The notes under the pieces are model-generated. The model saw nothing but the letters and a program-made list of their open reading frames with translations. It had not been told where the DNA came from and did not search any database. This document shows positions 59,736 through 63,370 of a stretch of DNA of 64,000 nt, in pieces. The position numbers were made by a program, and so were the translations under genes. Position 1 is the stretch's first letter, and every line of letters begins with the position of its first letter. This DNA comes from Blastocladiella emersonii ATCC 22665 (lineage: Eukaryota; Fungi; Blastocladiomycota): assembly GCA_025594325.1 (NCBI GenBank), contig JANHCV010000001.1, forward strand, positions 4,588,001 to 4,652,000, read 5' to 3'.

Positions 59736-62700
59736 CTACTCCCGCCGCCGCTGGCGCTTCGACTTGGGGGGCGGCGACGGCGAGAAGCTGCCCGACGACG
59801 AGGACGCGCCGTGGTGGTGATGGTGATGGTGGTGGTGGAACAGCGTGCCGGCCGAGGACGGACCCGCAACGGACGCGTGCGCCGCCGGACCTGCGCCGCC
59901 GCCCGACGCGGCGTCGTTCGGCTGCTGAGAACCGAAGGACGCCAGGAACTGCGACGGCGCCGGCGGCGAGAGCGGGCGGCCGTGGCTCGGCTCCTCGTCG
60001 AAATCGAGCTCGTCCAGCTCGCTCTCCGCGCCGCCGCCGCCCATCTCGTCGTCGTGCGGGGTGCTGGCGACGTGGGCGGCGTCCGCATCGAGCTGTGATG
60101 GGCTGATCGGAGAGTACGAGGTGGGAGAGTGGGGGGGACTGGGAGAGTAAGTGGGACTGACGGGCGAGTACGAGGGGCTATCCGGCGAGTACGAAGGACT
60201 GGTAGGAGAGTAAGTGGGACTGAAGGGCGAGTACGAGGGGCTGACTGGCGAGTACGAGGGACCGCCGGCCATCTCCTCCTCTAGCACCGCCAATGCCGCG
60301 ACAATCTCTTCCGCAGATACACCCATGGGTGCGGACGGCGACGTGCCGCCCTCGTCCACGTCCATGTCGACGTCCGAGCTGGGGTCGTAGTCGAACAGCG
60401 GCGCCGCGAGGCTCGCGCCCACGCCGTCATCGACGTCGTCCTCGTCGGTTTCGGCCGGGTGGTCATGGTCGTCGTCGTGGTTGCTCACGCCGCTGACCGT
60501 CGACGGGCTGTACCCGCCGCCGCCGCCGAAGAACCACGGGTTGTAGTACCCGGCGAACCCGGTCCCGAACCCGTCGTCAAAGTACCCGTCATCGAAATCG
60601 TCGTCGCCGTCGCTGCCGTGGTCGTCGCCGTAGTCGGTCGCGTCGGCGTCCATGCCGTCCGAGTCGAGCTCATCATCTCCGTCGTCCTCGTCGTCGGTGG
60701 CGCCGTCGAACATGGGCAGCGCGAACCCTGCCGCGCCATCGCCCGCCGCGGCAGCGGCAGCGGCCGCGTTCGCCGCAGCGAGGTCGAGCAGCTCGTCCTC
60801 GTCCATGGGCGGCTCGGCCGCGGGCGCCTCGTTGAACACGTACGACCCGACGGCCCAGTCCCACGTGCCGAGGGTTCCGCTGGGTGGCGGCGGCGGCAGC
60901 GTCGACATGTGCGCGAGGACGTGGTGGATCCCTGCTCCGCCGGCCCCAGCAGCGCCACCCGCGGCAGCGCCGCCCGCGCCCGCGCCCGCGTACTCGGGGA
61001 GCGGGACGCCAAAGTCGGGCGCGTCGTACGGGAACAGCGGTGCGGAGAGCGCGGGGAACCCGTCGGCGTAGGCCGTCGTCGTCGCCGCGCCGCCGGCGGC
61101 AGCGGGCTGCGGGCGCGGCCGCGCGCGGTCGACGACGGTGAGGTGCGTGAGCGGGGTCCAGAGTTGCTCGTTGGACGCGTGGAGTGACCCGTCGACGCGG
61201 ACGGCGAGCGGCGGGGGTTCGCGTTCACCGAGGGCGGCGGCGGTGCGGCGGTCGCGGTCGCGGCGCTCGGCGGTCGCGACGATCACGCGCGCAATGTCGC
61301 AGGTGATGCCCGGGCAGTGGACGAGCGACAGCGACGCGAGGTGCGGCGACGAGACGAGCAGGCTGGCGAGGACCGCGTCGGACAGCGCCGTGTGGGCAAA
61401 CGAGATGGACTGGAGCGAGGGCGCGGCGCCCAGGACGAGCTGTGCGAGCACGTCGAGCGATTTCGCCGCGCGGTACACGCCGACGGCGCCGCCGCGGTCG
61501 GCTGGCTGGTGCTGGTCGACGCGCTCGAGGGCGAGGTGGCGCAGGGATGGGGTCGGGAGAATGGTTTGTGGGGACATGGTGACGGTGCAGCAGCGCAGGG
61601 TCAGGCGCTCGACCTCTCCGAGGCTGCTGGCCAGCGGGAGCTACGCGGGCTCGGCGTGTTAGCGAGAGTCAATCCACTGAGCAAGAGCCGGGAAGCGTAC
61701 CGAGAGGTTGGCATGACCCTCGAGACACAGGCTCTTGATCCCAGCAGGCAGCACGCCGGGGAACACGGACGCGCGGGCGGCGGGCTGCAGGGCGCGTGCT
61801 CGAAGAAAGTCGACGGTACCGTGGAAGCGGAGGTAGGCGGTGTGGATCTTCGAGAAGAACTTGGCGAGGTAGGGCGCGAGGTCGGCGGCGCGGTGCACGC
61901 TGGCGCGCAGGTTGACAATGAGGCTCTTGAGGTGCAGCACGACGGGTAGCGGCGCATCGTCCTCGGCGGGGACCGGTGCGGGAAACGCGACGCCAGAGGA
62001 CGAGAGGGTGCTCACGACGCGAAGCCGCGAAAGCAACCGCAGCGCGAGCAGCGCGTCGAGATGGGCCACGGTAAGCTTCGGCATATCGAGCGTCAGGTCG
62101 CGCAGGCCGGGCATGCAGCGAGGCAGGCCGCGGCCAAAGACGGTAGCCGGTACGTTGAATGGCGGCGAGAGCTCGAGTGTGGAGAGGCGGCGGAAGGCAG
62201 CGGGCGTGGGACCGTGAAGGGCGGGGAGCATCGAGGTGGACGGGAAGCTCGATCGGACGCGAAGCTGGCGCAGCGGCGCGACGTGGTTGAAGAGAACGTC
62301 GAGAAACTGCGGCATCCAGTGCGGGCCCGGTGCGAGTTTGGCGGGCCCGAACGGCGAGCGAGCGGTCCACAGCATGTTGCGGTCGTAGAACTGGCCCGAG
62401 ATGGTGATAGAGGTGATCTCGCGCAGGTTCGGGAACGCGCAGCCGCCGCTGCCACTCGACGTCGTCGAGGCGGCGTCTGTCCGCGATCTTGGAGAGCCAA
62501 AGACGAGCTCGCACACGCGATCGAGAACAATCAAGTCATCGAACAGGATCCCCTGGGCGTCGGGTTGGCGTACGCCCGTGGACTCGTAGCTGCGCATGTT
62601 GCGCTCGAGGGCCATGAGCTGGACGCCCGGCTGGGTGTGGGCGGTCGAGTGGATGAAGGTGAGGTGGCGCAGCGGCAGGTGCACGGGGAGCGGCTCGGCG

Positions 62701-63161
62701 TCGAGGAGCGTCTCGAGGTGGGTGACGACGGCAGCGGGCGGCAGGGCCGAGAACGGGTTGGTGGCGGAGACGGGGCCCCAGCCGGTCGAGAAGGGCAGGG
62801 CGGCGATCTTGCGGATAAACTCGACGAGCGAGTAGGCCTCGACGTTGCGCGTGGTGCCGACGTGGTCGCGCACGGCGGACGAGAGCACGCGGCAGGTGCA
62901 GGCGAGCTCGTGCAGGTCCTTGGTCGAGGGGCAGCTGGTCGCGGCGACGTGGCGCACGACCATGGCGATCAGCTCGGCTGGGAGGCCCGCGAGGCGAGGC
63001 GCAGCGAGCGGTGGTGGATCGGCGGCGGCGGTAGCAGCAGGAATGGGAGAGTTGGGCGCGTCCTCGTCCATGTGCGACGAGGAGACGGGCGACTGGAGCG
63101 GCGTGGGGCCGGTCGAGTCATACTCGAGGCCGGCGTAGGCGTCGGCGTGCATTTGATCCAT
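59736..63161 (-). CDS. F-box-like/LRR-like protein (about 1120 aa) with acidic tail, Pol II CTD-like heptads, His9 and basic C-terminus; 2 exons
   Basis: Exon 1 (63161-61701), phase-0 intron 61700-61641 (GTACG...GCTAAC...TAG), exon 2 (61640-59736) in frame with the 59736..61577 ORF. F-box-like [16 protein letters not shown]...[15 protein letters not shown]-like repeats [56 protein letters not shown]. Confidence 0.8.
60096..60254 (-). repeat. RNA Pol II CTD-like heptad array (YSPxSP[ST])
   Basis: [53 protein letters not shown]. Confidence 0.93.
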
Positions 63162-63340: not shown

Positions 63341-63370
63341 CGACGCGTCGACGCGTCGGCTGTAACGCGT
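63341..63370. promoter_or_regulatory. Three ACGCGT (MCB-like) sites, including an 18-bp palindrome, about 180-210 bp upstream of the F-box/CTD gene
   Basis: cgacgcgtcgacgcgtcg (63341-63358, self-complementary) and acgcgt at 63365-63370. Confidence 0.4.

Follow-up and report, generated by a model that had tools for sequence, protein, structure and literature searches.

The locus H9P43_001764 of the fungus Blastocladiella emersonii ATCC 22665 lies in a 64,000-nucleotide stretch of contig JANHCV010000001.1 (assembly GCA_025594325.1, positions 4,588,001 to 4,652,000), which is referred to here as the window. Its protein (KAI9190330.1, or P0001) ends in a long tail whose reading frame holds a short array of heptads like those that make up RPB1's carboxy-terminal domain (CTD) in RNA polymerase II (Pol II). 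The whole gene, counted as the coding sequence with its intron, runs from 63161 to 59736 on the minus strand, as do all of its features described below. It consists of two exons and gives 1121 residues by the model used here, compared to 1072 residues in the public model. From its N-terminus onward, the protein shows an F-box-like motif, a leucine-rich repeat (LRR)-like solenoid, and an acidic tail containing the heptads, a run of nine histidines, and a basic end. Judged by its sequence, H9P43_001764 is a real, lineage-restricted two-exon gene.

Exon 1 (63161-61701) opens with the ATG at 63161 and codes for 487 residues, the same as residues 1-487 of P0001. It is followed by intron 1 (61700-61641), which is 60 nucleotides long, is in phase 0, and reads GTACGC..CTCGCTAAC..CGTAG, with CTCGCTAAC lying 18 nucleotides upstream of the acceptor. 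Exon 2 (61640-59736) adds 634 residues (61640-59739) and the stop codon (59738-59736). The public model agrees with this one on both the start and intron 1. The intron also carries a signature that recurs across the window. Segments of 55-72 nucleotides with the form GTRNGY..YTRAY..YAG occur 32 times on the two strands, compared to 11.6 +/- 3.2 times in dinucleotide shuffles, and so the signature marks real introns in this DNA. Their donors are mostly GTACGY or GTGCGY, and the branch site is of the CTGAC/CTAAC type, with its A placed 10-29 nucleotides (mostly 14-25) from the 3' end. Among the introns derived from expressed sequence tags (ESTs) of B. emersonii, 102 of 105 have GT/AG ends, most are 60-79 nucleotides long, and every one of those analyzed has a CTAAC-like branch site (PMC2773782). 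When neighboring introns were enumerated on the basis of gene length only, this GC-rich DNA allowed many ambiguous solutions, and the signature count was used instead.

Further support for a single protein comes from P0054, the only relative, which was found in Joint Genome Institute (JGI) metagenome 3300047125. An exhaustive phmmer search with exon 1 against 1.84 billion representative proteins returned nothing beyond the H9P43_001764 protein itself and P0054 (34% identity, E 6.6e-26), and a profile search of a 5.8-billion set found no further relatives. When the alignment of these two sequences was scanned against metagenome contigs, it gave zero matches and missed even the known contig of P0054. 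The family thus has two known members in total, and P0054 is the only sequence available for comparison. Its gene occupies positions 817-3429 of contig Ga0499901_2767 (L001), which is 3.4 kb long and lower in G+C. A prokaryote-style gene caller had broken this gene into two open reading frames (ORFs) at a 99-nucleotide intron (L001 2167-2265, GTACGT..TTTAG), the position and phase of which match those of intron 1. Downstream of the intron, the reading frame stays homologous to exon 2 across the LRR region and then enters a tail that is acidic and rich in aromatic residues. The contig breaks off within this tail, possibly at a repeat, and neither its last 30 bases in an exact-word DNA scan nor its exon 2 in a protein search gave a match that would extend it. 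A single spliced gene is supported by the intron of P0054, which agrees in site and phase, by the homology that crosses the junction, and by the LRR-like solenoid, which also spans it. Intron 1 and the one protein can be considered well supported by this comparison, and an earlier note on this DNA, which had joined two ORFs across a 60-bp intron into a protein of about 1120 residues, was borne out at 1121.

The best-modeled part of the protein is the LRR-like beta/alpha solenoid (62417-61131, about residues 249-657), in which AlphaFold places some 12-14 strand-helix units. The prediction, made from a three-row alignment, has a predicted template modeling score (pTM) of 0.60; residues 249-657 mostly reach a predicted local distance difference test (pLDDT) value of 70-90, and residues 45-245 are poor. 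A model of P0054 was too poor to use (pLDDT 42), and its F-box region was no better. Foldseek against the PDB ranked TIR1, COI1, and D3 first, and against AlphaFold DB Swiss-Prot the top matches were TIR1-like, FBXL17, Pof3, FBXL2, FBXL6, Dia2, and MAX2. The probability given was 1.0 to TIR1, COI1, and FBXL2, as well as to ribonuclease inhibitor and the internalins, although the TM-scores reached no more than 0.2-0.47. The Pfam LRR family PF24758 scored 16-17 bits in both the H9P43_001764 protein and P0054, against a cut-off of 27. As a structural model, the solenoid is well supported, in line with the LRR-like repeats that had been read from the sequence, and the best fold matches are F-box/LRR proteins.

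The F-box-like motif lies near the N-terminus (62984-62865, residues 60-99). When residues 48-100 are taken in isolation, they score 16.3 bits with PF00646 and 15.6 bits with PF12937, compared to cut-offs of 20.5 and 24.3, and Pfam gave no F-box match on the whole exon-1 piece. The segment in P0054 (residues 8-60) scores 25.7 bits with PF00646 in isolation, which is above the same cut-off of 20.5, and 20.1 bits within the 454 residues scanned. The conserved L-P-x-E start and the hydrophobic or cysteine positions of helices 1-3 are found in both proteins, as ..LACTCRVL here and as LTTLPAELLNQII...FLCTCKLL in P0054. Residues L57, L60, P61, A62, E63, L64, C88, T89, C90, and L93 are the same in both, so that LPAEL and CTC are each conserved. 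AlphaFold draws helices at residues 62-75, 80-103, and 112-120, with a pLDDT of only about 30-38. Solved F-box proteins gave no sequence match. In the ESM Atlas, the clusters that come closest consist of F-box/LRR proteins from fungi (score 0.96; 144-148 features in common), which serves as a lead only. An F-box is likely to be present, at a level of confidence moderately above even. The N-terminal motif of the earlier note therefore stood in part: the relative's segment passes and the key residues are kept, but the protein's own segment falls short of the cut-off and has no confident AlphaFold fold.

If the motif is only a lookalike, H9P43_001764 would code for an LRR protein with a helical N-terminus and a role outside ubiquitylation. 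The subthreshold score, the lack of a sequence match among solved F-box proteins, and the absence of AlphaFold confidence over residues 45-245 all fit this view, as does the fact that generic LRR proteins (internalins, NLRs, and TLRs) score near the F-box/LRR proteins in Foldseek. On the other side, the segment of P0054 does exceed the F-box cut-off, the key positions are common to the two proteins, and F-box/LRR proteins head the list of fold matches in both libraries. A protein of this kind is very improbable here, and less likely still is that the two exons belong to separate genes, against which the shared intron and the homology across the junction both speak. The H9P43_001764 protein is a probable substrate adaptor of an SCF (Skp1-cullin-F-box) ubiquitin ligase. 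It resembles the FBXL-type adaptors, such as TIR1 and COI1 of Arabidopsis, human FBXL2, Pof3 of Schizosaccharomyces pombe, and Dia2 of Saccharomyces cerevisiae, in having an N-terminal LPxE..L..C-type motif followed by a long beta/alpha LRR solenoid. It differs from them in having no detectable sequence homology to any, in the roughly 150 poorly modeled residues between motif and solenoid, and in a 460-residue acidic tail with CTD-type heptads, nine histidines, and a basic end. F-box/LRR adaptors are a large and known class, and this protein is a lineage-restricted sequence orphan that resembles a member with an odd tail.

The tail (residues 661-1121) has a net charge of -67. Most of it is an acidic, Gly/Ala-rich disordered region with aromatic residues (61121-60258, residues 661-948), of which 21% is Asp and Glu and the net charge is -58. 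Toward the end lie the His9 tract (59837-59811, residues 1089-1097) and the basic C-terminus KSKRQRRRE (59765-59739), which fits the classical K-K/R-x-K/R pattern of nuclear localization. The acidic disordered tail, the nine histidines, and the basic end were noted before and are there in the sequence. From established knowledge of such features, it is reasonable to say that the tail and the protein are probably nuclear. The tail of P0054 (L001 2720-3429) is likewise strongly acidic with Phe, Tyr, and Trp, as in DEFIVSSDEILDQENPLDELPFYFE; the two cannot be aligned, and what is conserved is their character. The acidic-aromatic composition of both tails recalls that of acidic activation domains.

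The CTD-like heptad array (60254-60096, residues 950-1002) is the most unusual part of this tail. It begins with five contiguous YSPxSPx heptads (60254-60150, residues 950-984), one of which is the exact consensus YSPTSPS and the fifth of which is YSPVSPT. These are followed by a decayed unit, YSPSPPH, then by SPTS, and then by a sixth good unit, YSPISPS (residues 996-1002). In the decayed unit, one codon was lost, a Tyr became His, and a Ser became Pro. The earlier note had counted five in-register heptads and two degenerate ones; the five hold, but one of the two "degenerate" units is a perfect YSPxSPx that is merely out of register. In phmmer searches, the array matched the CTDs of RPB1 at E values down to 1.8e-39, and Pfam gave no report of PF05001 for the exon-2 piece.

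Three DNA runs of the source sample bear on the array. Their contigs cross intron 1 unspliced, which means that the runs behave as DNA. Two of them yield contigs in which the array is the same, and it is therefore no artifact of one assembly. The low-depth run X3, with a word depth of about 4-5x, has a 1-nucleotide insertion and a 1-nucleotide deletion at 59867 and 62219 that are absent from X1 and X2, which are deeper; both are most likely assembly errors rather than variants. No other contig of the source assembly covers 60170-60303 at 95% identity, so the array is not a recent, near-identical copy of another locus.

The history of the array can be read from its codons. Tandem Repeats Finder reports a 21-nucleotide period (5.6 copies) and a 63-nucleotide period (1.9 copies, 91% matches), and by direct comparison, the two 63-nucleotide copies are 86% identical, with nine differences. 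Every one of the six good heptads encodes Ser2 by TCN and Ser5 by AGY, a common pattern that points to the descent of all of them from one 21-nucleotide unit. The array would thus have arisen in place by tandem amplification of that unit. This means that its copies are not independent coincidences, and what has to be explained is that one heptad was amplified and afterward conserved. Of the nine differences between the 63-nucleotide copies, three are synonymous changes at the third position of Pro codons, five fall in three position-4 codons (V/D, F/V, and T/S), and one lies at the edge (G/S). The codons of Tyr1, Ser2, and Ser5 show zero differences. Position 4 has changed at five of nine sites compared to 4 of 45 elsewhere (Fisher p = 0.004), and among the six good heptads, every difference in a Y1, S2, P3, S5, or P6 codon is a synonymous one at the third position. 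Such variation, with positions 4 and 7 free, is like that of true CTDs and suggests selection on the peptide after amplification, as far as small counts in a young array allow.

The same repeats can also be explained by slippage. In that case, a disordered tail rich in Ser and Pro held one YSPxSP(S/T) by chance, which replication slippage then multiplied; the array is translated and has no CTD role, its likeness to the Pol II CTD is coincidence that only the amplification brought to view, and it serves at most as a set of generic proline-directed kinase sites or as a spacer. The tandem structure with its recent 63-nucleotide duplication, the single ancestor indicated by the TCN and AGY codons, the further short tandem repeats in the same tail, and the unit that has already decayed are all expected from slippage. 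Similar arrays in unrelated database proteins show that such amplifications recur. In addition, the heptads lie beyond the end of the P0054 contig, and their conservation cannot be demonstrated from it. What slippage explains less well is that, after amplification, Y1, S2, P3, S5, and P6 were kept through synonymous changes only and position 4 was left free, as in true CTDs, although the counts behind the p value of about 0.004 are small. Neutral slippage is a serious alternative that is, on balance, unlikely, and it is rated only a little below the reading of the array as a CTD-type docking module.

A different doubt concerns whether the array is translated at all. Relative to the translation used here, P0001 differs solely in the absence of 49 residues, and the gap is explained exactly by two extra predicted introns that leave only PSYSP of the array. 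Public "intron 2" (60255-60178, 78 nucleotides, GTACTC..GATAG) and "intron 3" (60161-60093, 69 nucleotides, GTCAGT..CACAG) are both in frame, free of stop codons, and without a branch-site motif. The public model may nevertheless be correct for all or some transcripts, and the array would then be missing from the main protein. Its exact lack of these 49 residues speaks for this, as do the GT starts and AG ends of both segments, their lengths, which are usual for introns in B. emersonii (60-79 nucleotides), and their third-position G+C content (GC3), which is the lowest in the gene. A variant of the same idea is that both in-frame segments are alternatively retained.

Several points oppose the public introns. 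The annotation came from funannotate with BUSCO, Augustus, SNAP, GlimmerHMM, and GeneMark-ES, and RNA sequencing (RNA-seq) is not mentioned (PMC9730499); being ab initio, introns 2 and 3 are predictions that lack transcript support. Neither segment contains a YTRAY branch motif, a motif reported for all of the EST-derived introns analyzed in this species (PMC2773782). Their donors also depart from the GTRNGY of the window's intron-like segments, with a T at +5 (GTACTC) and a C at +3 (GTCAGT). Both have lengths that are multiples of three, have no stop, and, when read in frame with the exons on either side, code for the known peptide repeat YSPxSPx, and the array diverges as coding sequence does. 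The annotation method, the absent branch motifs, the atypical donors, the open in-frame sequence, and the coding-type divergence together lead to the judgment that the heptad array is exonic, which is held with good but incomplete confidence. It follows that public introns 2 and 3 are probably prediction artifacts and that the deposited protein is probably 49 residues too short; the public model, with or without alternative retention, is improbable. The prediction of these introns is likely the result of the array's odd codon usage. No stretch of the gene has a lower GC3 than the one that holds the array (0.70 for the array, compared to 0.88 in the rest), and the array uses AGT, ACT, TCT, and CCT, codons that the rest of the gene has rarely or not at all. 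The in-frame GT..AG segments may still be retained in some transcripts and removed from others, which would turn the CTD-like module on or off.

How the array compares with known systems is best seen by starting with RPB1 itself. As in the RPB1 CTD, the units are tandem Y1-S2-P3-x4-S5-P6-x7 heptads in a disordered C-terminal region, one of them is an exact YSPTSPS, and their variation is restricted to positions 4 and 7. The array differs in lying off any polymerase core, within a strongly acidic tail, and in having six good units, whereas the CTD has 26-52 repeats in yeast and human. Pfam found none of the RPB1 domains (RNA_pol_Rpb1_1 to _7) in either exon at E values up to 10, in agreement with the earlier remark that RPB1 catalytic motifs are absent. 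A second repeated Ser/Thr-Pro platform beyond RPB1 is the C-terminal region (CTR) of Spt5, which is phosphorylated by a CTD-type kinase and read by the capping enzyme. Unlike the array, it has another repeat sequence, is conserved across eukaryotes, and is part of an elongation factor.

The CTD code is regarded as RPB1's own, and the endogenous mimics known so far are short motifs that occur singly in RNA-processing factors. Those of Trf4 and Sen1 resemble phosphorylated CTD. In two reports, these yeast proteins are described as endogenous CTD mimics in which a short motif binds the CTD-interaction domain (CID) of Nrd1 (PMC4186968 and PMC7110113). The likeness is that a CTD-like peptide on a nonpolymerase protein competes with or replaces the CTD at a CID, and this sets the precedent for the mechanism proposed here. 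The differences are that the Nrd1-interacting motifs are single and short rather than heptad repeats, that they sit in RNA-processing enzymes and not in a ubiquitin-ligase adaptor, and that binding was shown there, whereas the resemblance here is one of sequence. A "CTD-like sequence" in a VWA protein of Dictyostelium (PMC10539598) was considered and set aside, since it is apparently that protein's own C-terminal domain and not the Pol II CTD.

Other non-RPB1 proteins with two to five contiguous YSPxSPx units are present in the databases: P0035, P0044, P0047, P0053, P0041, and P0049. P0035 and P0044 are VWA-domain proteins with a CPSF6-RSLD-like stretch, P0047 is a RING/B-box protein of Saccoglossus kowalevskii, of the ubiquitin-ligase type, with a Nup98 GLEBS motif, and P0053 has an ADP-ribosyltransferase domain. 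These six have unrelated architectures and come from unrelated organisms, and some are possibly chimeras of gene model or assembly. They look like a scattered, undescribed class. A literature search on F-boxes with YSPTSPS and on CTD-like repeats or heptads outside RPB1 turned up no protein like that of H9P43_001764 and none of the six array proteins. The earlier note's statement that no system of this kind is known holds for the literature searched, but the sequence databases do contain other non-RPB1 arrays.

What could such an array do? Heptad pairs are the functional unit of the CTD. CIDs, the WW domain of Ess1/Pin1, and the capping enzyme bind one to three repeats, and CTD kinases take short repeat peptides. 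Given this short-repeat binding, five contiguous canonical heptads are long enough for CTD kinases, phosphatases, and readers. In the proposed mechanism, chosen as the most economical, the LRR domain would bind the substrate of the ligase, and the heptads would form a phospho-regulated docking or regulatory module linking the adaptor to the network of CTD kinases, phosphatases, and readers and thereby to sites of transcription. A variant, put forward in the earlier note, is that the heptads act as a decoy or trap. Skp1 binding, phosphorylation, reader binding, and the role as either targeting module or decoy are things that we infer from the sequence, and a CTD-mimic function we likewise infer purely from resemblance.

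Several findings weigh against an F-box/LRR-type adaptor with a CTD docking module. No transcript evidence of any kind was found, and querying RNA runs with the complete gene brought up none. The contig of P0054 stops within the acidic tail, before the position of the heptads. The protein's own F-box segment is below the Pfam cut-off, with an AlphaFold pLDDT of about 30, and the TM-scores of the solenoid to F-box/LRR structures are only 0.2-0.4, with generic LRR proteins close behind. The array is young (the 63-nucleotide duplicate is 86% identical), one of its units has already decayed, and its codons are atypical, which fits recent and possibly neutral slippage. Finally, proline-directed kinases act on Ser-Pro sites in general, and likeness to the CTD is no proof that the CTD machinery is used. 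Taken as a whole, an F-box/LRR-type probable SCF adaptor with a translated heptad array as a docking module for the CTD network is held tentatively, at somewhat less than an even chance. The fuller claim, of an SCF-type adaptor with a genuine, selected miniature CTD that enters the network of CTD kinases, readers, and condensates, so that either the ligase is brought to the transcribing polymerase or readers and kinases are trapped as substrates, is rather improbable.

The surroundings of the gene add a few observations. The ATP10 gene is convergent with H9P43_001764 at its 3' end, about 100 nucleotides away, and a gene for a type III glutamine synthetase lies about 0.9 kb upstream, head to head. 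Three ACGCGT sites, which are like the MluI cell-cycle box, fall within 28 nucleotides (63343-63370), 182-209 nucleotides upstream of the ATG. Over the whole window there are 68 such sites, compared to 51 +/- 7 expected. The cluster might reflect G1/S-type regulation of H9P43_001764.

This reading of the locus probably corrects a public gene model, and the intron signature, which is visible in the DNA without annotation, can be used to check other gene models of the assembly. It also points to a scattered set of non-RPB1 proteins with CTD-type arrays, which means that the phenomenon is undescribed and not unique. If the proposed role is true, a ligase adaptor with canonical heptads would be a natural experiment. 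It could show whether a CTD that is free of the polymerase is acted on by the kinases, phosphatases, and readers of the CTD, and whether the CTD code steers ubiquitylation.

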